Notes: generated by a model from the sequence alone, not told the origin. A stretch of DNA of 64,000 bases from Perkinsela sp. CCAP 1560/9 (GCA_965644495.1 CBFFSA010000001.1:2480001-2544000), one strand, 5' to 3'. Shown: positions 594 through 27,429, counted from the stretch's first letter. Numbers and translations: made by a program.

Positions 594-2039
594 GCGAGTA
601 AAACAAAAAGCTTAAAACCAATTTATAATTATAAAAGTATATAAGAATTATAAACCCTTAATAATTATAAATTTAGAATTTGTGCAAATTTATAATTATT
701 AATGCAACTTACAGTAGTACCCGGGCTGGGGACCCTGCCCCTCCCCGTCGGCCAGCATCCTGTTTCGCGACCGTGCCGCTGTCGGCACATGCCCGCCCTG
801 CGCCCTCCCGTATAACAAGGGAAGGGTTCCCAATGCAGGCTCGGGAGAGGTCGAAAGACCCGGTCCGGAACCTGCGCGAATGGCTTGTTATGCTTTTTTC
901 TCTGTTTTTATTTTCATTGTTTTTCAGCGGCATAATTTACATACAATTGCTAGTTTTGGGCTCACCAATTGCTAGTTATTTTATATAGAACATGACAACC
1001 CCCCCTATGGACCCTTCATGGCTCATGTATTGGGTAATATAGAGGCAATGCCGCGTTTCGTACTTCTCCCCCCAATTAAAAAAAAAAAAGAGCGGACGGG
1101 ATCCGGGGGTTTGGAGGTTGTCCCTATAATTTTTGGAAGATTATGGATGTTAATCGGTTGACAGGCTTTATCCTCACGCCTTGTTTTTTTCGAAAACAAG
1201 GTTCCCCAATGTGAGATAAAGATGAGTAAAGCTTTCTTTATTCTACGATTAACGCCTTAATGTTTTTTAACCGCATCACTGTTGACACGGCCGTACACCA
1301 CGCCTAGTTGCTCCACACTTCTAGGTCCCAAGTTGGTGCATGGGCAGAGGTTGAAAGCGTAACCTGTGTAGCTCGTGTGAGCTTGTAAAGGGCGTGGCAG
1401 TGGACTGGTCATCTATTGCTATCGTTATCCTTGTACGAGTTCTGTAAGTGAGGTTTGATTATGATTTCTTTTCTATATATGATTTACTATGTGTCCGGGC
1501 ATTTTTATACAGGTTTTCTTTTGTGTGACGTGTGTGCGGGCAGGTTGGTCGAGGGTTCCGGTGGGGGGAACCCCGTTAACAGAGTGACAGTGACATATAT
1601 GTTTGCAGGCCTAAAATTGTCGTGAGAACATATTATTTACAGTTTAATGTTGATGTTATGTTTTGAGATTGGGAAATAGGGCTTGTGAGCAATCAGATAC
1701 ATTTTAGTTGTTTCTTTGTTTACTATTCGATACATGTTATTTATTAAGGCCCGCGGCGTGGATTTCACAGTGTAAATTTTATTACAAATATTATTGTACG
1801 GTATGGGATACAGGGTAGAGGGAAGATAACGGGGGGTAAAGGAGATCAAGTCTCGCCCGTCTAAACGTGAGTTCTCGATCCTTTGAGGACGAATGAGATC
1901 TCCACGGGGGATAAATCTCCGAGATCATCATGTGAAGAAGAAGCCCTAATTTAAGGGGCAATATTGTATTTTAACCGCTGCACTGTAGGCGGGAATTATG
2001 AAAGATTGATATGTATTTTTGGAGGTAGATTCTCTCAAA

Positions 2040-2130
2040 AAAAAGGTGATTAAACAGAAAGGGGGTGATAAACAAAAAGGGGGTGATAAACAAAAAGGGG
2101 GTGATAAACAAAAAGGGGGTGATGAAAAAA
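2040..2130 (+). repeat. 18-bp minisatellite GGGGGTGATAAACAAAAA (~5 units; also at +5093 and +10186)
   Basis: Directly visible; it gives the INKKGV peptide repeat. Confidence 0.9.
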
Positions 2131-2330
2131 GAAGTGATGCGTCGTCTCACCCGCGCCAGGCTGGTCGCGCTCCATAAACCGAATGGTGGAATAAGACCTG
2201 TCGCCATTGGGGAAGTGTTGATGAAATTAGCGGGATGCATTCTCATACAAAGGTACGAGAACATTCTAGAGCCACTGTTCGCGCCATTACAGCATGGAGT
2301 ACTCTCGAAGGCAGGGTGCGAACGGGTAGT
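2129..2330 (+). pseudogene. CRE/SLACS-clade non-LTR reverse transcriptase fragment (N-terminal RT motifs)
   Basis: ARLVALHKPNGGIRPVAIGEVLMKLAG...PLQHGV...GCERVV, typical of CRE-clade RT domains 1-2. Confidence 0.85.
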
Positions 2331-2720
2331 TTGTTTGTTTTGTTTTATCACAAGGCCGTTTGTCTCCGAAGAGATATGGCCCCCTAGTTCCAGCCTAGGT
2401 CCGCTGTGCGGATGCTGATGCTCGAAGCATCTGTGCCAACACAGGAGTAATCTCAACCATAGAGGGCACACACCCGACTTATCCTCCTATGAAAGGAAAC
2501 CAATAATTATTAGCTCCAGGGTAGGAGGGGTTCGCTACTCCCCAGCGTGGATTAACAAGTTAATCCACTACCCTGCCTTAATAAAACTCTTGAAAATGTA
2601 ATTGGGCCTTTGTACTAGTGTCAGGAATTAAACATGAAGGATTTATTCGTGAACTACGGTATGATATTATTTGCAAAATTAGACAGACTTTTCTTATTTG
2701 TATTTCGCACGAATAAAAGT

Positions 2721-2759
2721 TGACTTTAACGATAAAGATACAGTTTCTGTACCTTGTTG
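2721..2759 (+). other. Spliced-leader exon-like 39-mer (not an SL RNA gene) between 34-bp direct repeats
   Basis: TGACTTTAACGATAAAGATACAGTTTCTGTACCTTGTTG. GATACAGTTTCTGTAC...TTG lies in the same register as kinetoplastid SL exons. No GT intron follows. Confidence 0.85.
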
Positions 2760-2793
2760 ACTTTTCTTATTTGTATTTCGCACGAATAAAAGT

Positions 2794-4295
2794 GAAAAGA
2801 GACATTACGGATCCAAAAAGAGATGCAGTGTGCCAGAAGAGCTCAACAAGCAATACGCCGCACAAAGGGTTATGCTCCCAGAGGAAGTAGAGAGTCAAGT
2901 CAATGAGGTTATGGCGACCATGCAACAGAATGACATAGAAGTCGAAGTAACCTGGTTCCCCGTTGGAGGTAGGAAAGAGACAGCGACAACATGGCGAGGT
3001 ACGGTAGAGGACAATGGAGACGAGGAAAATCCTATCATTGTTCCCTACCCATGGGGTAACTATCCTCTGCCTAATAGCAACGTGTGTTATACGCGCATCG
3101 TGATATCAGCAAGTGAGCCAAAGATGCCAGGCAAATTGCCCGAATCGGACGATGAAACTGCACCATCAGAAGAGACGAACGACAGTTTCAACCCCCGGGA
3201 CGTTACAACATAGAACACATACATTACCCAGGGGCCACTAGGGATTGAAATATTGAAACAGCGGTTGCGAACGGCGCTGGATCTCCCTTCTCGAATGTCG
3301 CCACAGCTACAAGCCCTTTGGGATATCTTGTGTGCTTGGATAGACGATAGCGCAGAAAGAGGGGGCGTGAACAGCGACGCCGTCAATCACAAAAACGTCG
3401 GCCAAAGCACAGTTGACCAGATACGCATTCTGCAAGGAATATATCGAGGAGCAGATGCTTGATATATACGCTCACAATACGTTACCCAGAAAGACCCACA
3501 GGACCGACTTGGTAATGTAATTGAGCAAAGCGTAACCTACAATCAAGCAACCACGTATACGAGCCGTGGACCCCAGCGGACCCGCTATACGCCTCGCATG
3601 CCGATACGAGGGCGAGTATATGCAAATCGGACCCCCATAAATCGGACTGGCATACTAGAACATGGCATTACGCGTCAAGCGACCATCGCACCACGCGCTC
3701 CGGATTTTCGTGGACGGGGGATCGGTCCACAGCACTGACTCTCAAGAGTCCTCCCCCCGAGGAAAAGCAAGTACACACCAATAAAAAGGAAGTTAAAAGA
3801 TCAAATACAGAATCTAAAATACAAAAATATCAATATGAAGCAGAACACGAAAACGAAAATTAAAATACAAAGTCAAATTGCAATAAACAAAGCAAGTACA
3901 AAACGGAAAAACATTTATCAGCCAGTATTACAGACCAGCACCTCTATCCGACCCGTTTGCAAGACACAAACGGAAAAACTACCGTCCCACACGTGCAAAG
4001 TTCGAATCAGCAATATCGATACCCACAGATCCACTACCCGACGTATCATCACCAAGGCTCATCGTCAGACCAATGGATCCCACATCAAAATATCGAATAT
4101 TACCCAGCCACCGAGACACAACATACCAGGAACAGACCCCCTTACGTTATGTCCAATTTCCTCAACATGACATCTCCTTCGGTAATGGAGACGTTGAAGC
4201 CTATGTGTGCGGAGACAACATGGACTACCAGGTGCCGTCTGCTATGCCATATGCGGAGTTTGGGAATACCCATTACGGATACGGGGGTCATACGA
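2794..4295 (+). mobile_element. YR retrotransposon 5' part: ORF1 pseudogene (2794-3738, in-frame stops at 3211 and 3460) plus truncated recombinase
   Basis: Matches 12980-14481 of the longer copy. ORF1 aligns with the 17055-18384 protein. Confidence 0.8.
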
Positions 4296-5686
4296 GTTTT
4301 TTTTCTTTCAGTTTGGTACTGAACCGTCGTGTCATACGTCTTCACGTGCGCACCCTTATAGGCTTCTTTTCCATTCCAGATCACGAATGGTGGAACCAAA
4401 TCACCGCTTAAAGATGCAGCAGTTACAAGAGTTGCGCTTCGTTTGTCTCCTACTGCAATGCTATGCGCTTCTTGCCCCTGATATGTTAAGCCACGCTCCG
4501 CAAGAGAATTATAGGCGACGGCAGTTTCGTCCATGTTAATTAGAAGAGGGGAAATAACCTTGTCGTTCCATTCTATGCCTACATAATAACATATACGCAG
4601 TAGCATATCTCGCGCAAGGTCGTTTAAATTTGTTGGTAGAGCGCCTTCGGGTGTATTTCTTGTCGATTTCATCGAAATATCCATTTTCGACAGCCACCGG
4701 ATGAAGGTATGATAGGATGGTATAAACGTTTCTTCATCTTTTACCTTGGCACCAGATTTAACTTTGTCTACGAGATGTTTCGTTAGATAATCAATGTCGT
4801 CAGAATCGTGCATGATTGCTTCACGTGTAATTGCCCAGAGCAGGTTCTTACCTACAGGAATTCCGTAAAATATTAGCTCATTCAATAGCCTGCGAATGAG
4901 GGGTTCATAGAATGACAACATGCTTGGTCGTTGGTTAGATGTATTCTTAGGAATTAAGGACTCGTCTCCGAGCTTCTCGCGTTTTTGCCACCAAAGACGA
5001 AGAATTTGATATTCGATTTGTTCAGCAATGCTCGGATATACAGATTTCAGTTTTTTGCATAGGTTAGTGTAATGAGGAAACCGTCCTCCCCTCTTTGGGA
5101 GACGTACGAAGTAGTCTGATTGATGCATGAAATAATCCATGGAATCACACAGACAAATCTTCACGTTGGAGACGAATTGCTTCTTTACGCAATGTGACAT
5201 TTCCACATGTTCAGAATCATCGTCTTCAGCGAGAGGAGCATCACTACTTTCATCACTCATTGAGCGCGGCGCATCAACGCTTCGCGCCGTCCAACAAAAA
5301 GAAAACGAAAATTGAAGCGACGTAGAATTATCGTCCCAGAATATTGGTATGCCGTCGCCGTTAAGACTAAATAAACCTCCATGAAATTTACATGCTATCA
5401 TTTCACGCTCCTTGCGCTCCTCAATAATGAACTTGGTACGGTCTTCAAGCAATAAAGTTTCGACGTAACTGAGAAAAAGAGATTCATGCTCACTCGCAAA
5501 TGATTGGAACATATTTACAAAAAGTTCCTTAAAAAAAGAATTTTCCCCTCCATTTTCTAAGCAGGATGTAAGAAAACGCCGCTTTTTCTCCATCCATCGA
5601 GGAGGGGGTCGGCCGGATACGCTAGTAAATTGTTCAATGCTGCCTACGTTCTGATCTTGTCCCCTTTTCCCCTTCGGTCGTGACAT
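4296..5686 (-). pseudogene. pogo/Tigger-like (CENP-B HTH + DDE_1) transposase, 3'-truncated; the ORF runs on antisense through YR sequence to 4142
   Basis: FIPSYHTFIRWL (HTH end), LINMDETAV (first catalytic D), KRSATLVTAASLSGDLVPPFVIWNGK. The remaining catalytic residues are lost at the unit junction. Confidence 0.85.
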
Positions 5687-7221
5687 GCGAGTAAAACAAA
5701 AAGCTTAAAACCAATTTATAATTATAAAAGTATATAAGAATTATAAACCCTTAATAATTATAAATTTAGAATTTGTGCAAATTTAAAATTATTAATGCAA
5801 CTTACAGTAGTACCCGGGCTGGGGACCCTGCCCCTCCCCGTCGGCCAGCATCCTGTTTCGCGACCGTGCCGCTGTCGGCACATGCCCGCCCTGCGCCCTC
5901 CCGTATAACAAGGGAAGGGTTCCCAATGCAGGCTCGGGAGAGGTCGAAAGACCCGGTCCGGAACCTGCGCGAATGGCTTGTTATGCTTTTTTCTCTGTTT
6001 TTATTTTCATTGTTTTTCAGCGGCATAATTTACATACAATTGCTAGTTTTGGGCTCACCAATTGCTAGTTATTTTATATAGAACATGACAACCCCCCCTA
6101 TGGACCCTTCATGGCTCATGTATTGGGTAATATAGAGGCAATGCCGCGTTTCGTACTTCTCCCCCCAATTAAAAAAAAAAAAGAGCGGACGGGATCCGGG
6201 GGTTTGGAGGTTGTCCCTATAATTTTTGGAAGATTATGGATGTTAATCGGTTGACAGGCTTTATCCTCACGCCTTGTTTTTTTCGAAAACAAGGTTCCCC
6301 AATGTGAGATAAAGATGAGTAAAGCTTTCTTTATTCTACGATTAACGCCTTAATGTTTTTTAACCGCATCACTGTTGACACGGCCGTACACCACGCCTAG
6401 TTGCTCCACACTTCTAGGTCCCAAGTTGGTGCATGGGCAGAGGTTGAAAGCGTAACCTGTGTAGCTCGTGTGAGCTTGTAAAGGGCGTGGCAGTGGACTG
6501 GTCATCTATTGCTATCGTTATCCTTGTACGAGTTCTGTAAGTGAGGTTTGATTATGATTTCTTTTCTATATATGATTTACTATGTGTCCGGGCATTTTTA
6601 TACAGGTTTTCTTTTGTGTGACGTGTGTGCGGGCAGGTTGGTCGAGGGTTCCGGTGGGGGGAACCCCGTTAACAGAGTGACAGTGACATATATGTTTGCA
6701 GGCCTAAAATTGTCGTGAGAACATATTATTTACAGTTTAATGTTGATGTTATGTTTTGAGATTGGGAAATAGGGCTTGTGAGCAATCAGATACATTTTAG
6801 TTGTTTCTTTGTTTACTATTCGATACATGTTATTTATTAAGGCCCGCGGCGTGGATTTCACAGTGTAAATTTTATTACAAATATTATTGTACGGTATGGG
6901 ATACAGGGTAGAGGGAAGATAACGGGGGGTAAAGGAGATCAAGTCTCGCCCGTCTAAACGTGAGTTCTCGATCCTTTGAGGACGAATGAGATCTCCACGG
7001 GGGATAAATCTCCGAGATCATCATGTGAAGAAGAAGCCCTAATTTAAGGGGCAATATTGTATTTTAACCGCTGCACTGTAGGCGAGAATTATGAAAGATT
7101 GATATGTATTTTTGGAGGTAGATTCTCTCAAAAAAAAGGTGATTAAACAGAAAGGGGGTGATAAACAAAAAGGGGGTGATAAACAAAAAGGGGGTGATAA
7201 ACAAAAAGGGGGTGATGAAAA

Positions 7222-7423
7222 AAGAAGTGATGCGTCGTCTCACCCGCGCCAGGCTGGTCGCGCTCCATAAACCGAATGGTGGAATAAGACCTGTCGCCAT
7301 TGGGGAAGTGTTGATGAAATTAGCGGGATGCATTCTCATACAAAGGTACGAGAACATTCTAGAGCCACTGTTCGCGCCATTACAGCATGGAGTACTCTCG
7401 AAGGCAGGGTGCGAACGGGTAGT
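7222..7423 (+). pseudogene. CRE-clade RT fragment (copy 2)
   Basis: Copy of 2129-2330. Confidence 0.85.
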
Positions 7424-7813
7424 TTGTTTGTTTTGTTTTATCACAAGGCCGTTTGTCTCCGAAGAGATATGGCCCCCTAGTTCCAGCCTAGGTCCGCTGT
7501 GCGGATGCTGATGCTCGAAGCATCTGTGCCAACACAGGAGTAATCTCAACCATAGAGGGCACACACCCGACTTATCCTCCTATGAAAGGAAACCAATAAT
7601 TATTAGCTCCAGGGTAGGAGGGGTTCGCTACTCCCCAGCGTGGATTAACAAGTTAATCCACTACCCTGCCTTAATAAAACTCTTGAAAATGTAATTGGGC
7701 CTTTGTACTAGTGTCAGGAATTAAACATGAAGGATTTATTCGTGAACTACGGTATGATATTATTTGCAAAATTAGACAGACTTTTCTTATTTGTATTTCG
7801 CACGAATAAAAGT

Positions 7814-7852
7814 TGACTTTAACGATAAAGATACAGTTTCTGTACCTTGTTG
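7814..7852 (+). other. SL exon-like 39-mer (copy 2)
   Basis: Identical to 2721-2759. Confidence 0.85.
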
Positions 7853-7886
7853 ACTTTTCTTATTTGTATTTCGCACGAATAAAAGT

Positions 7887-9388
7887 GAAAAGAGACATTA
7901 CGGATCCAAAAAGAGATGCAGTGTGCCAGAAGAGCTCAACAAGCAATACGCCGCACAAAGGGTTATGCTCCCAGAGGAAGTAGAGAGTCAAGTCAATGAG
8001 GTTATGGCGACCATGCAACAGAATGACATAGAAGTCGAAGTAACCTGGTTCCCCGTTGGAGGTAGGAAAGAGACAGCGACAACATGGCGAGGTACGGTAG
8101 AGGACAATGGAGACGAGGAAAATCCTATCATTGTTCCCTACCCATGGGGTAACTATCCTCTGCCTAATAGCAACGTGTGTTATACGCGCATCGTGATATC
8201 AGCAAGTGAGCCAAAGATGCCAGGCAAATTGCCCGAATCGGACGATGAAACTGCACCATCAGAAGAGACGAACGACAGTTTCAACCCCCGGGACGTTACA
8301 ACATAGAACACATACATTACCCAGGGGCCACTAGGGATTGAAATATTGAAACAGCGGTTGCGAACGGCGCTGGATCTCCCTTCTCGAATGTCGCCACAGC
8401 TACAAGCCCTTTGGGATATCTTGTGTGCTTGGATAGACGATAGCGCAGAAAGAGGGGGCGTGAACAGCGACGCCGTCAATCACAAAAACGTCGGCCAAAG
8501 CACAGTTGACCAGATACGCATTCTGCAAGGAATATATCGAGGAGCAGATGCTTGATATATACGCTCACAATACGTTACCCAGAAAGACCCACAGGACCGA
8601 CTTGGTAATGTAATTGAGCAAAGCGTAACCTACAATCAAGCAACCACGTATACGAGCCGTGGACCCCAGCGGACCCGCTATACGCCTCGCATGCCGATAC
8701 GAGGGCGAGTATATGCAAATCGGACCCCCATAAATCGGACTGGCATACTAGAACATGGCATTACGCGTCAAGCGACCATCGCACCACGCGCTCCGGATTT
8801 TCGTGGACGGGGGATCGGTCCACAGCACTGACTCTCAAGAGTCCTCCCCCCGAGGAAAAGCAAGTACACACCAATAAAAAGGAAGTTAAAAGATCAAATA
8901 CAGAATCTAAAATACAAAAATATCAATATGAAGCAGAACACGAAAACGAAAATTAAAATACAAAGTCAAATTGCAATAAACAAAGCAAGTACAAAACGGA
9001 AAAACATTTATCAGCCAGTATTACAGACCAGCACCTCTATCCGACCCGTTTGCAAGACACAAACGGAAAAACTACCGTCCCACACGTGCAAAGTTCGAAT
9101 CAGCAATATCGATACCCACAGATCCACTACCCGACGTATCATCACCAAGGCTCATCGTCAGACCAATGGATCCCACATCAAAATATCGAATATTACCCAG
9201 CCACCGAGACACAACATACCAGGAACAGACCCCCTTACGTTATGTCCAATTTCCTCAACATGACATCTCCTTCGGTAATGGAGACGTTGAAGCCTATGTG
9301 TGCGGAGACAACATGGACTACCAGGTGCCGTCTGCTATGCCATATGCGGAGTTTGGGAATACCCATTACGGATACGGGGGTCATACGA
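7887..9388 (+). mobile_element. YR retrotransposon 5' part (copy 2)
   Basis: Copy of 2794-4295. Confidence 0.8.
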
Positions 9389-10779
9389 GTTTTTTTTCTT
9401 TCAGTTTGGTACTGAACCGTCGTGTCATACGTCTTCACGTGCGCACCCTTATAGGCTTCTTTTCCATTCCAGATCACGAATGGTGGAACCAAATCACCGC
9501 TTAAAGATGCAGCAGTTACAAGAGTTGCGCTTCGTTTGTCTCCTACTGCAATGCTATGCGCTTCTTGCCCCTGATATGTTAAGCCACGCTCCGCAAGAGA
9601 ATTATAGGCGACGGCAGTTTCGTCCATGTTAATTAGAAGAGGGGAAATAACCTTGTCGTTCCATTCTATGCCTACATAATAACATATACGCAGTAGCATA
9701 TCTCGCGCAAGGTCGTTTAAATTTGTTGGTAGAGCGCCTTCGGGTGTATTTCTTGTCGATTTCATCGAAATATCCATTTTCGACAGCCACCGGATGAAGG
9801 TATGATAGGATGGTATAAACGTTTCTTCATCTTTTACCTTGGCACCAGATTTAACTTTGTCTACGAGATGTTTCGTTAGATAATCAATGTCGTCAGAATC
9901 GTGCATGATTGCTTCACGTGTAATTGCCCAGAGCAGGTTCTTACCTACAGGAATTCCGTAAAATATTAGCTCATTCAATAGCCTGCGAATGAGGGGTTCA
10001 TAGAATGACAACATGCTTGGTCGTTGGTTAGATGTATTCTTAGGAATTAAGGACTCGTCTCCGAGCTTCTCGCGTTTTTGCCACCAAAGACGAAGAATTT
10101 GATATTCGATTTGTTCAGCAATGCTCGGATATACAGATTTCAGTTTTTTGCATAGGTTAGTGTAATGAGGAAACCGTCCTCCCCTCTTTGGGAGACGTAC
10201 GAAGTAGTCTGATTGATGCATGAAATAATCCATGGAATCACACAGACAAATCTTCACGTTGGAGACGAATTGCTTCTTTACGCAATGTGACATTTCCACA
10301 TGTTCAGAATCATCGTCTTCAGCGAGAGGAGCATCACTACTTTCATCACTCATTGAGCGCGGCGCATCAACGCTTCGCGCCGTCCAACAAAAAGAAAACG
10401 AAAATTGAAGCGACGTAGAATTATCGTCCCAGAATATTGGTATGCCGTCGCCGTTAAGACTAAATAAACCTCCATGAAATTTACATGCTATCATTTCACG
10501 CTCCTTGCGCTCCTCAATAATGAACTTGGTACGGTCTTCAAGCAATAAAGTTTCGACGTAACTGAGAAAAAGAGATTCATGCTCACTCGCAAATGATTGG
10601 AACATATTTACAAAAAGTTCCTTAAAAAAAGAATTTTCCCCTCCATTTTCTAAGCAGGATGTAAGAAAACGCCGCTTTTTCTCCATCCATCGAGGAGGGG
10701 GTCGGCCGGATACGCTAGTAAATTGTTCAATGCTGCCTACGTTCTGATCTTGTCCCCTTTTCCCCTTCGGTCGTGACAT
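9389..10779 (-). pseudogene. pogo-like transposase, 3'-truncated (second full copy)
   Basis: Identical translation to the 4142..5686 ORF. Confidence 0.85.
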
Positions 10780-12314
10780 GCGAGTAAAACAAAAAGCTTA
10801 AAACCAATTTATAATTATAAAAGTATATAAGAATTATAAACCCTTAATAATTATAAATTTAGAATTTGTGCAAATTTAAAATTATTAATGCAACTTACAG
10901 TAGTACCCGGGCTGGGGACCCTGCCCCTCCCCGTCGGCCAGCATCCTGTTTCGCGACCGTGCCGCTGTCGGCACATGCCCGCCCTGCGCCCTCCCGTATA
11001 ACAAGGGAAGGGTTCCCAATGCAGGCTCGGGAGAGGTCGAAAGACCCGGTCCGGAACCTGCGCGAATGGCTTGTTATGCTTTTTTCTCTGTTTTTATTTT
11101 CATTGTTTTTCAGCGGCATAATTTACATACAATTGCTAGTTTTGGGCTCACCAATTGCTAGTTATTTTATATAGAACATGACAACCCCCCCTATGGACCC
11201 TTCATGGCTCATGTATTGGGTAATATAGAGGCAATGCCGCGTTTCGTACTTCTCCCCCCAATTAAAAAAAAAAAAGAGCGGACGGGATCCGGGGGTTTGG
11301 AGGTTGTCCCTATAATTTTTGGAAGATTATGGATGTTAATCGGTTGACAGGCTTTATCCTCACGCCTTGTTTTTTTCGAAAACAAGGTTCCCCAATGTGA
11401 GATAAAGATGAGTAAAGCTTTCTTTATTCTACGATTAACGCCTTAATGTTTTTTAACCGCATCACTGTTGACACGGCCGTACACCACGCCTAGTTGCTCC
11501 ACACTTCTAGGTCCCAAGTTGGTGCATGGGCAGAGGTTGAAAGCGTAACCTGTGTAGCTCGTGTGAGCTTGTAAAGGGCGTGGCAGTGGACTGGTCATCT
11601 ATTGCTATCGTTATCCTTGTACGAGTTCTGTAAGTGAGGTTTGATTATGATTTCTTTTCTATATATGATTTACTATGTGTCCGGGCATTTTTATACAGGT
11701 TTTCTTTTGTGTGACGTGTGTGCGGGCAGGTTGGTCGAGGGTTCCGGTGGGGGGAACCCCGTTAACAGAGTGACAGTGACATATATGTTTGCAGGCCTAA
11801 AATTGTCGTGAGAACATATTATTTACAGTTTAATGTTGATGTTATGTTTTGAGATTGGGAAATAGGGCTTGTGAGCAATCAGATACATTTTAGTTGTTTC
11901 TTTGTTTACTATTCGATACATGTTATTTATTAAGGCCCGCGGCGTGGATTTCACAGTGTAAATTTTATTACAAATATTATTGTACGGTATGGGATACAGG
12001 GTAGAGGGAAGATAACGGGGGGTAAAGGAGATCAAGTCTCGCCCGTCTAAACGTGAGTTCTCGATCCTTTGAGGACGAATGAGATCTCCACGGGGGATAA
12101 ATCTCCGAGATCATCATGTGAAGAAGAAGCCCTAATTTAAGGGGCAATATTGTATTTTAACCGCTGCACTGTAGGCGGGAATTATGAAAGATTGATATGT
12201 ATTTTTGGAGGTAGATTCTCTCAAAAAAAAGGTGATTAAACAGAAAGGGGGTGATAAACAAAAAGGGGGTGATAAACAAAAAGGGGGTGATAAACAAAAA
12301 GGGGGTGATGAAAA

Positions 12315-12516
12315 AAGAAGTGATGCGTCGTCTCACCCGCGCCAGGCTGGTCGCGCTCCATAAACCGAATAGTGGAATAAGACCTGTCGCCATTGGGGAA
12401 GTGTTGATGAAATTAGCGGGATGCATTCTCATACAAAGGTACGAGAACATTCTAGAGCCACTGTTCGCGCCATTACAGCATGGAGTACTCTCGAAGGCAG
12501 GGTGCGAACGGGTAGT
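12315..12516 (+). pseudogene. CRE-clade RT fragment (copy 3; continues at 19878)
   Basis: Copy of 2129-2330. It ends in GCGAACGGGTAGT, which is repeated at 19878-19890. Confidence 0.85.
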
Positions 12517-12906
12517 TTGTTTGTTTTGTTTTATCACAAGGCCGTTTGTCTCCGAAGAGATATGGCCCCCTAGTTCCAGCCTAGGTCCGCTGTGCGGATG
12601 CTGATGCTCGAAGCATCTGTGCCAACACAGGAGTAATCTCAACCATAGAGGGCACACACCCGACTTATCCTCCTATGAAAGGAAACCAATAATTATTAGC
12701 TCCAGGGTAGGAGGGGTTCGCTACTCCCCAGCGTGGATTAACAAGTTAATCCACTACCCTGCCTTAATAAAACTCTTGAAAATGTAATTGGGCCTTTGTA
12801 CTAGTGTCAGGAATTAAACATGAAGGATTTATTCGTGAACTACGGTATGATATTATTTGCAAAATTAGACAGACTTTTCTTATTTGTATTTCGCACGAAT
12901 AAAAGT

Positions 12907-12945
12907 TGACTTTAACGATAAAGATACAGTTTCTGTACCTTGTTG
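12907..12945 (+). other. SL exon-like 39-mer (copy 3)
   Basis: Identical to 2721-2759. Confidence 0.85.
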
Positions 12946-12979
12946 ACTTTTCTTATTTGTATTTCGCACGAATAAAAGT

Positions 12980-13924
12980 GAAAAGAGACATTACGGATCC
13001 AAAAAGAGATGCAGTGTGCCAGAAGAGCTCAACAAGCAATACGCCGCACAAAGGGTTATGCTCCCAGAGGAAGTAGAGAGTCAAGTCAATGAGGTTATGG
13101 CGACCATGCAACAGAATGACATAGAAGTCGAAGTAACCTGGTTCCCCGTTGGAGGTAGGAAAGAGACAGCGACAACATGGCGAGGTACGGTAGAGGACAA
13201 TGGAGACGAGGAAAATCCTATCATTGTTCCCTACCCATGGGGTAACTATCCTCTGCCTAATAGCAACGTGTGTTATACGCGCATCGTGATATCAGCAAGT
13301 GAGCCAAAGATGCCAGGCAAATTGCCCGAATCGGACGATGAAACTGCACCATCAGAAGAGACGAACGACAGTTTCAACCCCCGGGACGTTACAACATAGA
13401 ACACATACATTACCCAGGGGCCACTAGGGATTGAAATATTGAAACAGCGGTTGCGAACGGCGCTGGATCTCCCTTCTCGAATGTCGCCACAGCTACAAGC
13501 CCTTTGGGATATCTTGTGTGCTTGGATAGACGATAGCGCAGAAAGAGGGGGCGTGAACAGCGACGCCGTCAATCACAAAAACGTCGGCCAAAGCACAGTT
13601 GACCAGATACGCATTCTGCAAGGAATATATCGAGGAGCAGATGCTTGATATATACGCTCACAATACGTTACCCAGAAAGACCCACAGGACCGACTTGGTA
13701 ATGTAATTGAGCAAAGCGTAACCTACAATCAAGCAACCACGTATACGAGCCGTGGACCCCAGCGGACCCGCTATACGCCTCGCATGCCGATACGAGGGCG
13801 AGTATATGCAAATCGGACCCCCATAAATCGGACTGGCATACTAGAACATGGCATTACGCGTCAAGCGACCATCGCACCACGCGCTCCGGATTTTCGTGGA
13901 CGGGGGATCGGTCCACAGCACTGA
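12980..13924 (+). pseudogene. ORF1 (Gag-like) of YR element A, two nonsense codons, 5'-incomplete
   Basis: One frame from 12980 to TGA 13924 with TAG and TGA interruptions; the TAG sits where the paralogue has Trp. Confidence 0.75.
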
Positions 13925-14142
13925 CTCTCAAGAGTCCTCCCCCCGAGGAAAAGCAAGTACACACCAATAAAAAGGAAGTTAAAAGATCAAATACAGAATC
14001 TAAAATACAAAAATATCAATATGAAGCAGAACACGAAAACGAAAATTAAAATACAAAGTCAAATTGCAATAAACAAAGCAAGTACAAAACGGAAAAACAT
14101 TTATCAGCCAGTATTACAGACCAGCACCTCTATCCGACCCGT

Positions 14143-15177
14143 TTGCAAGACACAAACGGAAAAACTACCGTCCCACACGTGCAAAGTTCGAATCAGCAAT
14201 ATCGATACCCACAGATCCACTACCCGACGTATCATCACCAAGGCTCATCGTCAGACCAATGGATCCCACATCAAAATATCGAATATTACCCAGCCACCGA
14301 GACACAACATACCAGGAACAGACCCCCTTACGTTATGTCCAATTTCCTCAACATGACATCTCCTTCGGTAATGGAGACGTTGAAGCCTATGTGTGCGGAG
14401 ACAACATGGACTACCAGGTGCCGTCTGCTATGCTATATGCGGAGTTTGGGAATACCCATTACGGATACGGGGGTCATACGATTTATTATGGGACGCCCGA
14501 TATCTACACAGACCAAGCTCACGTACCTAAAACACCTTATAGCAATTTTGAAGCGACTGGAACTCTGTACGCGGCAATCCCAAATGTACACGAAAGTGTT
14601 GATCCGCAAGGGGGCATCTATCCCACAGCACCAGGCGGCCCCAGTAACCAAGAAGGATTTGCAGAAAACGCTTATGAGCATGCCGGAAGACAGAGCAGTG
14701 GTTGCACTCCTTGCTTTCAAAATAGCTTCCCGGGCTGGGGAAATCGCCAAGCTACGCAGGAAGGATGCTATAGTGCTCCGCCCGTCACGTATTACCATCA
14801 ACTGGGGTACGAAATCGAAAACCTCCAAGGCACAACCATTCCGCCCCGACAATCTAGTGGTAATCGAGGGAGAAACCACCAGGCGTATCTACAACTACTT
14901 GAAGAGGTTAAGCCCGCATCAGCGGATCAGTAACTGTACAACACAAGACCTCACTCGGACGCTCAAGAAAGGACTGGGGAGCAATTACAGTTCCCACTCC
15001 TTCAAGCATGGATCAGTCCAATGCCTGATGTGGCAAGTCGCCAAAGGCTCCATAACTATACCGCAAGTCATGCAGCTGGCCAAACACAAACAATTGTCAA
15101 CCCTTATGCGCTATGCAGGTATGAACGAGACTACTGCACTGGCACTAGGAAGTCAGAAGCTGACCAAACTCCTATGA
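14143..15177 (+). CDS. Tyrosine recombinase of YR element A (catalytic domain uninterrupted)
   Basis: KIASRAGEI (R), KSKTSK (K), SHSFKHG (H-x-x-K-H), LAKHKQLSTLMRY (H...Y). The frame extends up to 13888 with one TAA at 14047. Confidence 0.88.
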   Translation: MQDTNGKTTVPHVQSSNQQYRYPQIHYPTYHHQGSSSDQWIPHQNIEYYPATETQHTRNRPPYVMSNFLNMTSPSVMETLKPMCAETTWTTRCRLLCYMRSLGIPITDTGVIRFIMGRPISTQTKLTYLKHLIAILKRLELCTRQSQMYTKVLIRKGASIPQHQAAPVTKKDLQKTLMSMPEDRAVVALLAFKIASRAGEIAKLRRKDAIVLRPSRITINWGTKSKTSKAQPFRPDNLVVIEGETTRRIYNYLKRLSPHQRISNCTTQDLTRTLKKGLGSNYSSHSFKHGSVQCLMWQVAKGSITIPQVMQLAKHKQLSTLMRYAGMNETTALALGSQKLTKLL

Positions 15178-15494
15178 AATCTAAGACGCTCGAATACCAA
15201 GGTGGGTGGATCGGAATCACGGAGAAAATGCAGTACGGTATTCGACGTACGATAACCAGAATGTTTCGCCGAACATGCCGCCCTACGGCGGAGCAGATGC
15301 AGACGCTACCTATCCACGCGAAACATGTACCGCCGCTGTACCTGGAACGTTTAACTTCTTTGATGAATGCGCCTACGCGAGAACGCTTCACACAAGTGTG
15401 GGAACTACTTATTAACCCAACGAACGATGCACCAATCACCACTATACCTCTCGTAGCTCCCACATGTCTGAGCAAGAAAGACGTATGCATCTTG
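15174..15494 (+). pseudogene. N-terminus of the third (putative RT/RNase H) ORF of element A, truncated
   Basis: RPTAEQMQTLPIHAKHV...RFTQVW aligns with RPTQEMMQTLPIHARRV...RFDQIW in element B. RT identity is inferred from position; no catalytic motif is present. Confidence 0.6.
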
Positions 15495-15926
15495 TGGGGT
15501 TGCTGTACGTATGTTCCACGCGCTCGATTATGTCAGCCTGCATTAAAGATTTGATATCTGAGTGCGTCAAATCCTTTGTTGTGACAGGGGAGGGTTTTAG
15601 TTGGGGTAGTAATCCTGTTGGATTCGTTATCTTCCCCCATATCTGATCAAAGCGTGTACGTACGTGTGGCAACATCAAATCTCTAATTCGGTGCAGTCGT
15701 AGCGGCTTTACCCGACGTGCATGTATCGGCAATGTTTGCATCATTTCCTGGGTCGGACGTTCAGTTTTCCAGTGTATACGCGACCATACCCTCTTTGGGC
15801 TCCAAGCCGCGTCATTCAGGCCGTTTTCGTACACGCATGCCATTCTTTCTCCGTCTTGGGGCTTTCCGATGTATGGAGATGTTATTCCTGGATGATTCGG
15901 GGAATCGCGTGACTTTGTGTTTGATC

Positions 15927-17091
15927 CTACAAAGTTCGCGTTGCCCTCTGGGTACCCAACGCCATTGCAGTTGTCTCGTTGCGGCCAGAATATCGGAGAA
16001 GTGTGCTCAATTGCTTGTGCTGCGCCATACGTTGTACCTCCTCGATTGTGAGCGTATTCTCCGCCACTCGGGTCATTAGATGGCGGATCGCCCCATGCTT
16101 TAAGCTGTGGGAGCTGTAACCTGGGACAAGATGCGTCCTGAGGAATTGGGAAATTTACTCTGTCGTCACCGTACTGAAGCGCTGGGCAGGGCCCAAGGTT
16201 ATAAGGTATTGGAATATTCTGTTGATATACAGTTGTAGGTCCCCTCTATTACCGTGAACGTGTCCGGGCGGTAGGGTTGAGATCGCGTTGCCTTGGTACG
16301 TTGCCCCCAGTCTATTATAATGCGATCTGGTCGCAGTATTATGACGTCCCGGCGCCGCATCTTTGCCACTTCGCCAGCTCTTGATGCTGTTTTGTACGCT
16401 ACTAACATGACGATTTCCATTAGTGGTGTCATCTTCGGCAAAAGGTATTGGATTTGGTCCTTTGTAATTGGGCATGCTTGGTGCGTCGGGATCATGGCGC
16501 CTGCCCTCACTAGCGTTTTGGCGAGCATTTGGGCGTGAATGCCTGTGTTAGTATCGAAATCATGTGTTTGATGTACGTGTGCTTGGTTTGTGGTGTTACT
16601 TTTAACGCGAAAATGAAAGCCACCACGTTGTCGTCGTTTAACTCCATGTTCGCCGCACGCATCTGACGCAGCAAACGGGCCCGTGTCGACCACGTTGTTC
16701 TTGCCCATAATGTGATTAGCTCCTTCTGAGTTTCCGCGCTCTTTATGCCTATCTCGGCCATAACGTAACGGACGTCGTTCATGAAACCGCCCGTCCTGCG
16801 GGATGCAGCGGAGGACTTCAAAACGCGTTTTTGTGCGGAACGGCCTTGATTCCTCTGACTTTTTGCTTCGGTTAAACTTACTGTCGCCACTTGTTTGTGC
16901 GCGATATTGTTCGCTTCGAGACCAATGCTTGTTTTTACAATTTGATTCAATTTTTCCTTGACAATTCTATTTATACTTGCTATCTTTCGATTTTTTCTGA
17001 AACTATCTTTTTTATAAATAACTGGCGTTTTGTCCGGGGGCGGACCTGCATTTGTCACTTCTTTGCGCCAGACCCCCGACCGGCGAAATCC
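15927..17091 (-). pseudogene. Tyrosine recombinase of element B, frameshifted
   Basis: TTWSTRARLL, KTASRAGEVAK, HSLKHGA and QHKQLSTLLRY, spread over several frames. Confidence 0.85.
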
Positions 17092-18384
17092 CGGCGCTGT
17101 TGAGTTGCCTCGGGAGTGTACGGGCGATTCGAGGCGGCGAAACTCCGATTCCCTCGATACCGGGAGTAACTCCCCACTCCTCGCCCACGATTGTAATTGT
17201 GGTTAAGTAATTGTGGTTAACCACGATGCTTGTGGTTAAGATCTGACCGAGAACGTCTGTCGGATCCTTCTGAGCTACGTAATGTGATTCAACATACTTG
17301 GGATCTGCTCCTGTGCGATGGCGTGCTTGATCCGTATTCGACCCAATATCATTTGGCCCATTCGGGCATCATTGGCGCCAGCCACTTCAAGACCACCTTT
17401 TTCTTGAGTTGTAACTACCCACTCGTGGAATAATTCCCAGATACATTGCAGCTCTTCTGACAATACGAGCGGAAGCTTTAGTCCAAGGCGAATGCGATTC
17501 TCCAGTATATCATACTCTTTGCCCGGCTTCAGAAGTGCGCCCCACGTTATGACATCGTGCAAAGCAAAACCATCGCCTTTCTCCAATGCAACTGCCGGTC
17601 CTTCCCCCTCTCCGGATACCGTGTGGACGTCGATTGGAATCTTGTCTACGATTTCTATACTTCGATACGCAACGTCACGCATCGGGATATCCACTGTAGC
17701 ATGTGCAAAGGTTACAGTGAGAGCTCCGGACTGCATCGAGTCATTTTCATGGACCACCCCACGCCAAGTGTAAGATGCATCGGAATCATCGGTTTCCCAG
17801 CGCCAAACCACCACAATCTCCACGACATATTGCTCGACCAGACTCTTGATTTCATCGATTTTTGTTGTTACCTGTTGTTCGGTCAGGTTCGTTAAATGTT
17901 CCTGTCGGGGCTGTGTAGGATCCTGAGCTGGTTGATCTCGTGCCGCGTGGGACTCAGCTTGAAAACTGTTTATATTTGTTGGATTCGTACGGTCGGGTAC
18001 GCGCGCCGCGTTCCCCACAACAGGAGAGCGCAAGCCCTCAATTAGTGCCTCCATCCTCTCGCGTGCCTCAACTTCACGACGCTCCCATCGCTTTTGTTGT
18101 TCTTCTTGGCTTTTGAGTACTCCTTCTAGCTGCTTCGAAAGTCTCCCGAACACGTCAACCATTAAATTGGCTGCCTGTACACGGGCCTCGCCCTCTACTG
18201 CAGGAAAGTTCTCCCGGGCTTGCGTAAACGGGTTCGACAAGCGCGGCAACGATTGAGACCTCTGGCGGGTCGACTTTCGCGTAGCAGGATAAATAGGCAA
18301 AGGCTCCGGTGTCCGCTCTCCGGCGTCATTGTGCGAAGCAGTTGTTGCCTCGCGAGCCGCGGCTTGGGCACGTGTGAGGGGCAT
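17055..18384 (-). pseudogene. ORF1 (Gag-like) of YR element B; 1-nt deletion at ~17312 and a 14-bp duplication at ~17210
   Basis: 369-aa ORF with a coiled coil. Correcting the frames gives GADPKYVESHYVAQKDPTD...DFAGRGSGAKK*, matching GADA*YIRSQYVTQKDPQD...DFRGRGIGPQH* in element A. Confidence 0.78.
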
Positions 18385-21763: not shown

Positions 21764-22558
21764 AGCTAGGGAGGTGGGGTGCGCTATACCCCTGCGCCTT
21801 AGGTAATGCAAATAAGGCGCCCCTTGACCAAAAAAACCACTCTATCTTTTGAGGGTGGGTAAAAAACACACACACACATTCCAAAAATTAGCCCGAATGG
21901 CACCCACCCTAGTTTCTTAGTACCTTGTTATATTCGGTACCGGGCGGTGCCACCCATTCTGCATTGTCGGAATGGCATCTACCCTAATTATTTAGTGCCT
22001 TGTTTTGCTGGCACCGGGTAGTGTCGTCCATATTGTTTTCATCGTGCTCACCCTAGTTATTTAGCGTCTTGTTATGCGACGCCGGGTGAGTTAGCTAGGG
22101 AAGCTAGGGTCGCTACGCCCCATCATCCGACCAAAAGTCGAATGCCCTGACCTAGACCCTAGGTATGTAGCGTCCGGCTTACGTTGTATGTCGGATGATG
22201 GGACTTAGCGATCCCAGCCTCCCGAGCTAACTCACCCGGCGTCGCATAACAAGGCGCTAAATAGCTAGGGTGAGCACGATGAAAACAATATGGACGACAC
22301 TGCCCGGTGCCAGCAAACCGAGGCACTAAATAGTTAGGGTAGATGCCATTCCGACAATGCAGAATGGGTGGCACCGCCCGGTACCGAATATAACAAGGTA
22401 CTAAGAAACTAGGGTGGGTGCCATTCGGGCTAATTTTTGGAATGTGTGTGTGTGTTTTTTACCCACCCTCAAAAGATAGAGTGGTTTTTTTTGGTCAAGG
22501 GGCACCTTATTTGCATTACCTAAGGCGCAGGGGTATAGCACACCCCACCTCCCTAGCT
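21764..22558. repeat. Long inverted repeat: ~368-bp arms (21764-22131 / 22190-22558), 58-bp spacer
   Basis: The arms are reverse complements with scattered mismatches. Confidence 0.93.
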
Positions 22559-22917: not shown

Positions 22918-24842
22918 TGGTCGCGGACAAGGCGAACAAGACGTTGTCGGTTATTGACTCCGGGGTGGGTATGACGAAAGCGGACTTGGTGAATAACCTC
23001 GGCACGATTGCTCGATCCGGCACCAAGGCGTTCATGGAGGCCCTGGAATCGGGTGCGGACCTCAGTATGATCGGACAATTCGGTGTCGGGTTCTACTCGG
23101 CCTACCTGGTCGCGGACAAAGTCACTGTCGTCTCGAAGCACAATGACGACGAGGCGCACGTTTGGGAATCCTCCGCGGGTGGCACCTTCACTGTGGCTCC
23201 CTGCCCCTCGGCCCCAGTGAAGCGGGGGACAATGATCACGCTGCACCTGAAGGAGGACCAACAGGAGTACCTGGAAGAGCGACGACTGAAGGACCTCGTG
23301 AAGAAGCACTCCGAGTTCATCGGCTACGACATCGAGCTACAAGTGGAGCGCACCACGGAGAAGGAAGTTACGGACGACGAGGCGGAGGAGGAAAAGGCGG
23401 AGGAAGTGAAACCGGAGGGAGGGGAGGACGAGCCCAAGGTAGAGGAGGCGGAGGAACCCCAGGAGGTGAAGAAGAAGACAAAGAAGGTGAAGGACGTCTC
23501 CGTGGAGTATGAGGTGCTGAACAAGAACAAGCCTCTGTGGACAAAGGATCCGAAGGAGGTGTCACAGGAGGAATACGCCGCCTTCTACAAGACCATCAGC
23601 AACGACTGGGAGGAGCATCTCTCCGTCAAACACTTTAGCGTGGAAGGGCAGCTGGAATTCCGCGCAGTACTGTTCGTCCCGAAGCGTGCTCCATTCGACA
23701 TGTTCGAGCCCAATCGCAAGCGAAACAACATTAAGCTGTACGTGCGTCGTGTCTTCATTATGGACAACTGTGAGGAGATCTGTCCGGAGTGGCTGGCGTT
23801 CATTCGAGGCGTCGTCGACAGCGAAGACCTTCCGTTGAACATCTCCCGTGAGAACCTGCAGCAGAACAAAATCCTGAAGGTGATCCGGAAGAACGTCGTG
23901 AAGAAGGCGGTGGAGTTGTTCGAAGAGCTTGCTGCGGATAAGGACAGTTACAAGAAGTTCTATGAGCACTTCGGGAAGAACATCAAGCTTGGCATTCATG
24001 AGGATGCGACGAACCGAACCAAACTTTGCGAACTGCTACGCTACAACAGCACGAAGAGCGGCGAAGATGCTACGAGCTTGAAGGACTACGTCACCCGCAT
24101 GAAGGAGGGCCAGAAGAGCATCTACTACATCACGGGAGACAGTCGCAAGAAGCTTGAGACATCCCCCTTCCTCGAAGAAGCCAAGCGGCGTGATATGGAA
24201 GTCCTGTTCATGGTGGATCCCATTGATGAATACGTCATGCAGCAGCTCAAGGACTTTGAGGATAAGAAATTCGTGTGTCTCACCAAGGAGGGCGTCAAGT
24301 TTGAAGAAACGGAGGAGGAGAAGAAGGCACGGGAGGAGAACAAAGCATCCTTCGAGAAGCTTTGCACGACGATCAAAGAGATTCTTGGTGAGAAGGTGGA
24401 CAAGGTTGTGCTCACCGAGCGCTTGGCGACCTCCCCCTGTATCCTGGTTACCTCTGAACACGGGTGGAGTGCACACATGGAACAGATCATGAAGCACCAA
24501 GCCCTGCGAGACGCTTCCATGTCCTCGTACATGGTGTCAAAGAAGACAATGGAGATCAATCCGCACCACAGCATTATTAAGGAGCTCCGACGTAAAGCGG
24601 ATACTGATCAGAACGACAAGACCGTGAAGGATCTCGTCATGCTCCTCTTCGATACCGCGTTGTTGACCTCAGGGTTTAACCTTGAAGATCCTTCCTCCTA
24701 CGGCGAACGCATCCACCGCATGGTGAAACTCGGCCTCTCCATCGATGACGACGAGCTTCCCCCTGCCCCCGTGGCGGCCAGCTCGGAAATGGATGCTGAC
24801 GATCTTGCGGAGGGCGAAGGACGTATGCAGGAGGTCGATTAA
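22918..24842 (+). CDS. HSP90: Cytosolic HSP90 (HSP83), 5' end in gap
   Basis: [50 protein letters not shown]-terminal MQEVD. Confidence 0.97.
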
Positions 24843-25311
24843 GTCGCTTATCGGTTGATCCTATGAGATCACATTCGGGGAAGGAAATCAATTGCTAAAT
24901 TTGATCTTTTTGCTTTTTACGAATTAAGTTCAAGGAACGCTGAAATGCAAGATAATCGCCAGGTTGAGCAAGATATGACACTTTGCTCCTGCAATATCTT
25001 TTGTTTTGTGCGAATCAAAGCAGTTCGTTACGCATGACAATTGTTCACCTTATGCTAGTTTCAAACAGTAAAGTTATTCACGCAACTTTAGGCGACTGGG
25101 TGATGGTATAAACTATGATATACTCATATGATAAGTACTCCTTTTTAAAGTTAATGTTGGCAATATTCGGGATTTATATTAGAACCTCTTCTTCCTTGCT
25201 TGTATACTTTGCTAGACCTTATTCGAACTGTTCTTGCAGCCATATTCACCGATTTCACACAGAAATACTAGCCTTCTTTTTCATTTTCCTCTCTTTCCAC
25301 TGCATTCCACA

Positions 25312-27429
25312 ATGTCGGAAACATTTGCGTTCCAAGCGGAGATCAATCAGCTGATGTCTCTCATCATCAACACCTTTTACAGCAATAAGGAGATTTTCTT
25401 ACGCGAGCTGATCAGCAACTCTTCCGACGCCCTGGATAAGATTCGGTATCAAAGCCTTACGAACCCTGAAGTTCTTTCTGCGGATGAGAAGTTGCACATT
25501 CAATTGGTCGCGGACAAGGCGAACAAGACGTTGTCGGTTATTGACTCCGGGGTGGGTATGACGAAAGCGGACTTGGTGAATAACCTCGGCACGATTGCTC
25601 GATCCGGCACCAAGGCGTTCATGGAGGCCCTGGAATCGGGTGCGGACCTCAGTATGATCGGACAATTCGGTGTCGGGTTCTACTCGGCCTACCTGGTCGC
25701 GGACAAAGTCACTGTCGTCTCGAAGCACAATGACGACGAGGCGCACGTTTGGGAATCCTCCGCGGGTGGCACCTTCACTGTGGCTCCCTGCCCCTCGGCC
25801 CCAGTGAAGCGGGGGACAATGATCACGCTGCACCTGAAGGAGGACCAACAGGAGTACCTGGAAGAGCGACGACTGAAGGACCTCGTGAAGAAGCACTCCG
25901 AGTTCATCGGCTACGACATCGAGCTACAAGTGGAGCGCACCACGGAGAAGGAAGTTACGGACGACGAGGCGGAGGAGGAAAAGGCGGAGGAAGTGAAACC
26001 GGAGGGAGGGGAGGACGAGCCCAAGGTAGAGGAGGCGGAGGAACCCCAGGAGGTGAAGAAGAAGACAAAGAAGGTGAAGGACGTCTCCGTGGAGTATGAG
26101 GTGCTGAACAAGAACAAGCCTCTGTGGACAAAGGATCCGAAGGAGGTGTCACAGGAGGAATACGCCGCCTTCTACAAGACCATCAGCAACGACTGGGAGG
26201 AGCATCTCTCCGTCAAACACTTTAGCGTGGAAGGGCAGCTGGAATTCCGCGCAGTACTGTTCGTCCCGAAGCGTGCTCCATTCGACATGTTCGAGCCCAA
26301 TCGCAAGCGAAACAACATTAAGCTGTACGTGCGTCGTGTCTTCATTATGGACAACTGTGAGGAGATCTGTCCGGAGTGGCTGGCGTTCATTCGAGGCGTC
26401 GTCGACAGCGAAGACCTTCCGTTGAACATCTCCCGTGAGAACCTGCAGCAGAACAAAATCCTGAAGGTGATCCGGAAGAACGTCGTGAAGAAGGCGGTGG
26501 AGTTGTTCGAAGAGCTTGCTGCGGATAAGGACAGTTACAAGAAGTTCTATGAGCACTTCGGGAAGAACATCAAGCTTGGCATTCATGAGGATGCGACGAA
26601 CCGAACCAAACTTTGCGAACTGCTACGCTACAACAGCACGAAGAGCGGCGAAGATGCTACGAGCTTGAAGGACTACGTCACCCGCATGAAGGAGGGCCAG
26701 AAGAGCATCTACTACATCACGGGAGACAGTCGCAAGAATCTTGAGACATCCCCCTTCCTCGAAGAAGCCAAGCGGCGTGATATGGAAGTCCTGTTCATGG
26801 TGGATCCCATTGATGAATACGTCATGCAGCAGCTCAAGGACTTTGAGGATAAGAAATTCGTGTGTCTCACCAAGGAGGGCGTCAAGTTTGAAGAAACGGA
26901 GGAGGAGAAGAAGGCACGGGAGGAGAACAAAGCATCCTTCGAGAAGCTTTGCACGACGATCAAAGAGATTCTTGGTGAGAAGGTGGACAAGGTTGTGCTC
27001 ACCGAGCGCTTGGCGACCTCCCCCTGTATCCTGGTTACCTCTGAACACGGGTGGAGTGCACACATGGAACAGATCATGAAGCACCAAGCCCTGCGAGACG
27101 CTTCCATGTCCTCGTACATGGTGTCAAAGAAGACAATGGAGATCAATCCGCACCACAGCATTATTAAGGAGCTCCGACGTAAAGCGGATACTGATCAGAA
27201 CGACAAGACCGTGAAGGATCTCGTCATGCTCCTCTTCGATACCGCGTTGTTGACCTCAGGGTTTAACCTTGAAGATCCTTCCTCCTACGGCGAACGCATC
27301 CACCGCATGGTGAAACTCGGCCTCTCCATCGATGACGACGAGCTTCCCCCTGCCCCCGTGGCGGCCAGCTCGGAAATGGATGCTGACGATCTTGCGGAGG
27401 GCGAAGGACGTATGCAGGAGGTCGATTAA
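25312..27429 (+). CDS. HSP90: Cytosolic HSP90 (705 aa from [10 protein letters not shown])
   Basis: All HSP90 signatures, including [21 protein letters not shown]. The true ATG is at 25312. Confidence 0.99.

Follow-up and report, generated by a model that had tools for sequence, protein, structure and literature searches.

The question raised by this locus is whether a −1 ribosomal frameshift occurs at the end of a Gag-like ORF1 in a family of tyrosine recombinase (YR) retrotransposons and, if so, which protein it leads to. The window, the whole stretch of 64,000 nucleotides that we analysed (G000:C1:2480001-2544000), belongs to a 21-Mb kinetoplastid-type genome that uses the standard genetic code, and it carries two such elements, A on the plus strand and B on the minus strand. 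An earlier note on this DNA had proposed that a slippery heptamer near the end of ORF1 fuses ORF1 to the recombinase in the manner of gag–pol. The heptamers claimed for A and B are present: the pattern GGATTTY-N5-7-GGGGG-N30-36-CCCCC had exactly four matches in the window (3702, 8795 and 13888 on the plus strand and 17091-17036 on the minus strand), where none was expected from 100 shuffles. The three plus-strand cassettes are copies of a single sequence, carried in the units of a 5093-bp tandem array. The spacer, G5 run, hairpin, alternative stem, C-run and TAA at 14047 that had been described were all found (Table 1), and translation reproduced the −1 peptides given for both elements. The description of GGAUUUU as a known viral slippery heptamer was also correct, as −1 shifting at G_GAU_UUU is documented for pea enation mosaic virus (PMC5009743).

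Table 1. Features of elements A and B in the window (positions counted from the first nucleotide of the window).
Feature	Position	Strand	Remarks
Repeat copies of the element A cassette	3702-3758 and 8795-8851	+	
Gag-like ORF1 remnant, element A	13016-13921	+	5′-truncated; in-frame stops at 13397 and 13646
Slippery heptamer G_GAT_TTT, element A	13888-13894	+	identical at 3702-3708 and 8795-8801
7-nt spacer, element A	13895-13901	+	
Alternative stem GTGGAC/GTCCAC	13896-13901 / 13912-13917	+	
G5 run, element A	13902-13906	+	
TGA ending ORF1, element A	13922-13924	+	YR opens in frame directly after it in intact copies
Hairpin GACTCT-ca-AGAGTC	13923-13936	+	begins inside the stop codon
C6 run	13939-13944	+	14 nt past the TGA; possible partner of the G-run
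TAA in the −1 frame, element A	14047	+	
Tyrosine recombinase ORF, element A	14143-15177	+	Pfam Phage_integrase; out of the ORF1 frame
Pieces of the pol (−1) frame, element A	14259-14933, 15021-15554	+	homology to the uninterrupted −1 ORF of L005
Start of the RT region, element B	15442-15843	-	cut where A is met
Recombinase, element B, two frame-shifted pieces	16199-17058 (16510-17058, 16199-16708)	-	
Cassette, element B	17036-17091	-	heptamer 17091-17085, G5 17077-17073, TGA 17057-17055, C5 17040-17036
Gag-like ORF1, element B	17275-18384	-	cut short by a 1-nt deletion at 17312

In both window copies, the −1 frame runs from the heptamer into recombinase-coding sequence, and this is the observation that speaks for a −1 shift fusing ORF1 to YR. 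A and B are dead, truncated copies of two lineages, however. They converge and are both cut at ~15.5 kb, at the start of the RT region. Compared with the intact copy L005, to which it is 98-99% identical, element A carries two stops in ORF1 and a TAA in the −1 frame (Table 1), as well as two 2-nt deletions near 14312 and 14328. Its pol-frame pieces lie over YR and extend as far as the beginning of the RT region, the element being cut at ~15500. Compared with L044 (97.5% identical), element B has 1-nt deletions at 17312 and 16996, a 26-nt insertion at 17225 and further indels at 16541 and 16237; past its ORF1 stop at 17275, homology passes through other frames. YR lies in the −1 frame in the window because of the two 2-nt deletions in A and the 1-nt deletion at 16996 in B. 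Thus, the recombinase does lie in the −1 frame in the window copies, as had been stated, but not in their intact relatives, copy-specific indels being responsible. The claim that the heptamers are phased in the ORF1 frame fared better: in the window the ORF1s are broken upstream of them, but homology with every intact lineage supports the phasing. The two elements meet tail to tail at 15440-15560, where they are cut at nearly the same homologous point (MQTLPIHAK/R...), at the start of the RT region. The cassette was unchanged in contigs from three DNA runs, and a variant with both 2-nt deletions was also found; a search of RNA runs did not find the element in any RNA library.

We therefore turn to the intact copies. 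Genome searches gave at least 119 matches to a recombinase query and at least 62 to an ORF1 query, with about 80 copies of 29-37% YR identity represented by L080 alone. In the intact copies of this genome, an ORF1 of 438-495 codons (495 in the intact relatives of element B) ended in TGA and was followed by a YR ORF of 377-432 codons, the recombinase frame opening in the same frame at the codon after the ORF1 stop. YR matched Pfam Phage_integrase in the 0 frame; a Pfam search of ORF1 found nothing. This layout was constant in at least 12 diverged lineages in this genome, in 7 environmental elements and in Diplonema papillatum, and the intact lineages share only ~40-50% YR protein identity. Intact copies with ORF1 and YR in one frame had been named in the earlier note as evidence that would speak against its proposal, and this was the arrangement of every intact copy, with a single stop between the two. 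Since YR is in the ORF1 frame in all intact copies (>20 lineages or organisms), since their −1 frame encodes RT/RNase H and since the frame relation in the window stems from indels particular to the two copies, a −1 fusion of ORF1 to the recombinase is now barely credible.

The Gag-like ORF1 is of two kinds, having either a CCHC knuckle or an RG/RGG-rich tail. A retroviral-type CCHC knuckle lies 20-60 residues before the shift site among L076, L078, L080, L084, L085 and L075, and the cassette lineages of this genome (L005-L069) have an RG/RGG-rich ORF1 tail and no knuckle.

Around the stop, the cassettes of this genome follow one order: a heptamer, 5-7 nt, G5-6, 12-18 nt (mostly 15), TGA-C, 14 nt and C5-6. 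The heptamer, read in the phase of ORF1, is G_GAU_UUY, G_GGU_UUU or G_GUU_UUC. Genome-wide, there were ~25 cassettes of the GGATTTY type and ~9 of the GGGTTTT type, all with TGAC. Within ~75 nt of cassette, 26 columns were invariant, and the flanks could not be aligned; the G-run was invariant in 12 aligned lineages despite differing codon phase. One otherwise intact copy (L027:1056-1064; G000:C1:2406496) has a −1-frame TAG directly after GGGTTTT, so that a shifted ribosome would stop at once; its sister copies L028 and L041 have TCG at this place.

We found that no stop interrupts the −1 frame over the whole length of the overlapping YR gene and that this frame continues into RT/RNase H. From the heptamer, it is open for >637 codons in L005, >943 in L019, >888 in L021 and 494-562 in L020, L024, L025 and L035. 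When the codons of the YR ORF were shuffled, 12-21 stops were expected in the −1 frame and none was seen in five copies from four lineages; for each of the five, 0 of 5000 shuffles were as low in −1 stops. The +1 frame across YR held 24-42 stops, as expected. In this genome, the −1 frame opens 5-59 codons ahead of the heptamer (in L075 the distance is 2 codons, and in environmental elements it is up to ~80), and in 10 of 10 lineages the stretch from this opening to the heptamer is free of AUG. The −1 frame has its first AUG 47-178 codons downstream in this genome, and in L078 and L086 it comes only at codon 530 or 582 of the −1 ORF. The −1 ORF of this genome gave a weak Pfam match to RVT_1, and the −1 ORFs of L078, L081 and L085 matched RVT_1 above the Pfam threshold and contained RNase H domains; the former are homologous to environmental RT-bearing −1 ORFs (E = 5e-31 and 7e-27). 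An excess of third-position substitutions in frame 0 was seen only in the YR core of L005/L011, other pairs being too similar or too diverged. One feature expected of programmed −1 frameshifting is thus present, in that a −1 ORF without its own start overlaps the end of an upstream ORF and encodes an enzyme.

The same arrangement recurs outside this genome. A recombinase profile search gave 860 relatives, mostly unnamed environmental proteins. On environmental contigs of 48-62% G+C, ORF1 was followed by TGA and, directly after the stop, by YR in the same frame, and a −1 pol ORF of 916-1308 codons opened 55-238 nt before the stop. In-phase heptamers were G_GAU_UUU in L075 and G_GGU_UUU in L076; in L078, L081 and L084, an in-phase G_GGA_AAC was followed by 5-6 nt and then a G-run. 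The swap to GGGAAAC alters the encoded amino acids and keeps the slipperiness. L085 and L086 had only imperfect sites at the homologous place and no canonical heptamer. In two genome copies of D. papillatum, an ORF1 of 405 or 413 codons was followed by TGA and an in-frame YR of 442 or 443 codons; the −1 pol ORF had 1041 or 1033 codons, and G_GGA_AAC lay in phase 18 nt ahead of the stop. In a 913-aa ORF of a Papus ankaliazontas transcript, RT/RNase H is preceded by the −1-frame cassette motif (GFSKGGVW..SLPP). L080, a more distant lineage from an ENA assembly apparently of the same organism as the window, has the stop TAG-G and not TGA-C. The D. papillatum locus L087 (JAPJBO010000198.1) holds three related elements within 14 kb, and an annotated 'gene' of 1630 aa there covers more than one element and has a translation that is not colinear.

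Several features argue for a frameshift into pol: the geometry of the site, the conservation of slipperiness rather than sequence, a −1 ORF without a start of its own, and strong selection against stops over 350-590 overlapping codons. The conserved, phased heptamer at the end of the Gag-like ORF is very probably a programmed frameshift site, and we have good confidence that the shift is of the gag–pol −1 type and would yield Gag-Pol. As in viral −1 signals (HIV-1, SRV-1/MMTV G_GGA_AAC and umbravirus PEMV G_GAU_UUU), the Gag-like ORF of these elements ends with an in-phase heptamer, 5-7 nt of spacer precede a G+C-rich element, and a long −1 ORF with no AUG of its own encodes RT/RNase H. Unlike in the viral gag–pol signals, the structure of the cassette is only putative, the 0-frame stop lies inside the putative stem-loop, and the −1 ORF first crosses ~350-590 codons that encode another enzyme in frame 0. 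Two points count against this reading: G_GAU_UUY is imperfect for re-pairing in the P site, and L085 and L086 lack a canonical heptamer. Transcriptional slippage was considered as well and is unlikely, the site having a run of only three or four T. We found no description of −1 programmed frameshifting in a kinetoplastid or diplonemid retroelement in the literature searched.

One possible alternative is that no recoding takes place, the three ORFs being expressed independently and the conserved block reflecting a protein constraint (an RGG-like Gag tail, 'DF.GRG.G') or a signal for RNA processing or replication. The motif does encode a conserved frame-0 peptide, some lineages have a conserved Met (M-QTLPIHA) near the start of the non-overlapping RT region, and the RNA structure is putative. 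However, 350-590 stop-free −1 codons lie upstream of that Met in every lineage, and the −1 ORF has no AUG at its 5′ end. Moreover, the change from GGAUUUY to GGGAAAC is one that a peptide constraint would not predict, altering residues while preserving a slippery site, and the G-run is kept in different codon phases. We regard independent expression of the three ORFs as highly improbable, and the frameshift into pol as the preferred reading.

The frameshift would be aided by an RNA structure starting at the G-run. As to the pairing of G-run and C-run that had been proposed for the window copies, both runs are invariant and complementary and are paired in the RNAalifold consensus, but they show neither covariation nor an excess of folding energy. 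Covariation was tested for the G-run:C-run helix, for the GACU/AGUC hairpin and for a putative pseudoknot, CUGGC:GCCAG; 90.6% of cells were pairable, with 0 compensatory changes. The GACT/AGTC hairpin was kept in most lineages, again without compensatory changes. The minimum free energy of the cassette was not below that of shuffles (z -1.1 to +0.9), and duplex energies were mostly not significant relative to shuffles. In the distant elements L075, L080, L084 and L086, the helix is built of different sequence, a suggestive difference that did not reach significance. A stimulatory stem formed from the G-run is plausible. At L080:4931-5010, the G-run reads GGGGTGG and the downstream C-run CCACCCC, so that the putative stem could here contain a compensated pair.

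If the −1 shift leads to pol, the recombinase must be reached in another way, and the stop codon that precedes it becomes the point of interest. The ORF1/YR stop was TGA in all lineages but one, and its context was UGA-C(UC/UA/UU/AA) in every cassette of this genome; none of the host genes ending in TGA (n=3) had a C after the stop. Three environmental elements had UGA-A at this place, and L080 had UAG-G. Over the first 90 codons past the stop, frames 0 and −1 had no stops and the +1 frame had 1-11. The first in-frame AUG of YR lay up to 138-158 codons past the stop, at positions that were not conserved. In four cases (B, L075, L080 and L086), an AUG lay 0-2 codons past the stop, which would also fit termination-reinitiation. 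Window host genes use TAA, TAG and TGA as stops. An alternative code in which UGA is a sense codon was rejected, since TGA serves as a stop in host genes and is otherwise missing from the ORFs of the elements.

Readthrough junctions are known from MuLV, which uses UAG with a pseudoknot, from alphaviruses, which use UGA-C, and from tobamoviruses, in which the stop is followed by CAA-UUA. Like these, the elements described here place one conserved in-frame stop between the ORF of a structural protein and that of an enzyme, and the downstream ORF is open from the stop onwards with no conserved AUG. Contexts of the readthrough type (UGA-C, UGA-CUA and UGA-CAA) occur in the cassettes of this genome. 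Unlike in the MuLV, alphavirus and tobamovirus systems, no 3′ pseudoknot was evident at the usual distance of 8 nt, and the context is not universal; the product would also differ from that of a readthrough gag–pol in being the recombinase only, and not pol. A 3′ readthrough stimulator was not evident at the cassette, which offers no more than a small hairpin starting inside the stop and, at +14, a C-run with its partner on the upstream side. With the UGA positioned in the A site, the G-run partner would be inside or behind the ribosome, and for this reason no classical 3′ stimulator can be discerned. On these sequence features, we find it an evenly balanced judgement that production of YR requires bypass of the UGA, probably by readthrough.

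It is also possible that the −1 shift into pol is real and that YR is made either by reinitiation after termination at the UGA or from a trans-spliced mRNA with an AUG of its own, the frame shared with ORF1 being a frozen accident maintained by selection on pol. The four AUGs close behind the stop and the missing 3′ stimulator would fit such a route, as would the processing of kinetoplastid polycistrons by trans-splicing and the presence past the stop of a C-rich tract followed by AG. Tca2 provides a precedent, showing that an element with a UGA between gag and pol does not necessarily rely on simple readthrough (PMC2194720). By contrast, frame 0 is stop-free for up to 138-158 codons before the AUG, whereas the +1 frame has 1-11 stops per 90 codons, the AUGs do not keep their positions, and the stop is nearly always UGA and, in this genome, always UGA-C. 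We consider reinitiation or a separate mRNA unlikely, without dismissing it, and the shared ORF1/YR frame could partly be a by-product of selection for the continuity of pol. Bypass of the UGA remains our preferred route to the recombinase.

Together, these observations most likely correct the picture drawn from the window alone, pointing to recoding that is conserved from kinetoplastids to diplonemids and to a shift that leads to pol and not to the recombinase. In the mechanism that we propose, most ribosomes would terminate at the UGA and yield Gag. Some would slip by −1 on the heptamer, aided by the structure that starts at the G-run, and yield Gag-Pol; some of those that stay in frame would bypass the UGA, most likely by readthrough, and yield Gag-YR. 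One short cassette may in this way give three proteins from one mRNA. Taken as a whole, it is quite likely that the cassette serves as a recoding hub of a YR retrotransposon family in kinetoplastids and diplonemids. The most detailed form of the proposal is tentative, a little short of an even chance: that a single cassette of ~60 nt sets the ratios of Gag, Gag-recombinase and Gag-Pol from one mRNA through termination, readthrough and −1 shift, that the complete YR gene is nested out of frame in the 5′ third of pol, and that the arrangement predates the split between kinetoplastids and diplonemids.

The elements resemble VIPER/TATE (Ribeiro et al. 2019, PMC6681497) in the order of Gag-like ORF, YR and RT/RNase H, in the kinetoplastid host, in a Gag-like ORF with or without a CCHC box and in the many diverged, degenerate copies. 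ORF overlaps are usually absent from VIPER and Ngaro (PMC3266345), unlike here, where YR is fully nested in the pol frame. In this respect, they resemble DIRS1-like elements, which have an extensive out-of-frame overlap of recombinase and pol (PMC3266345). DIRS1-like elements also have a methyltransferase domain and ITR/ICR termini (PMC3266345); the loci studied here are partial. We found no description of how the DIRS1 ORFs are translated in the literature searched, and no recoding in YR retrotransposons is described in PMC6681497, in a 2025 mobilome survey, in PMC3266345 or in the Atkins recoding review.

If correct, the cassette would be the first recoding signal described for YR retrotransposons within the literature searched, and it would unite two forms of recoding, a frameshift and the bypass of a stop, at a single site, together with >1 kb of overlap between genes, an unusual combination. 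It would explain how elements without obvious separate starts could set different levels of Gag, recombinase and RT. It would also give a rule for annotating intact copies, with YR in the Gag frame behind a UGA and pol at −1, and provide a natural reporter of −1 frameshifting and readthrough for the ribosomes of kinetoplastids and diplonemids, in which recoding has been little studied.

The nearest named relatives of the recombinase, from Papus ankaliazontas and Diplonema papillatum, fit a kinetoplastid-type host, as does the HSP90 tandem array of the window. The window contains a spliced-leader-like sequence ending ACAGTTTCTGTACCTTGTTG, which resembles the spliced leader of kinetoplastid SL RNAs. 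It lies at 2720-2757 (...GATACAGTTTCTGTACCTTGTTG), is flanked by two copies of a short repeat, cttttcttatttgtatttcgcacgaataaaag, and marks the host as a kinetoplastid. This junction sequence recurs as loose ends at L005:632 in contigs.

Several neighbouring repeats were observed. The 5093-bp tandem array occupies window positions 1-15200 with about three units, and the sequence immediately before the window adds a fourth; each unit contains a 514-aa minus-strand ORF and the 3′ part of the ORF1 of element A with its cassette. The 514-aa ORFs (4142-5686 and 9235-10779, minus strand) had no Pfam match. A 302-nt inverted repeat at 21830-22491, with arms that are 96% complementary and separated by 58 nt, lies just before an HSP90 tandem array at 22918-37800. 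This array consists of six identical units of 2587 bp, each of which holds one full gene with a 731-codon ORF (Pfam HSP90, E = 2.7e-228).
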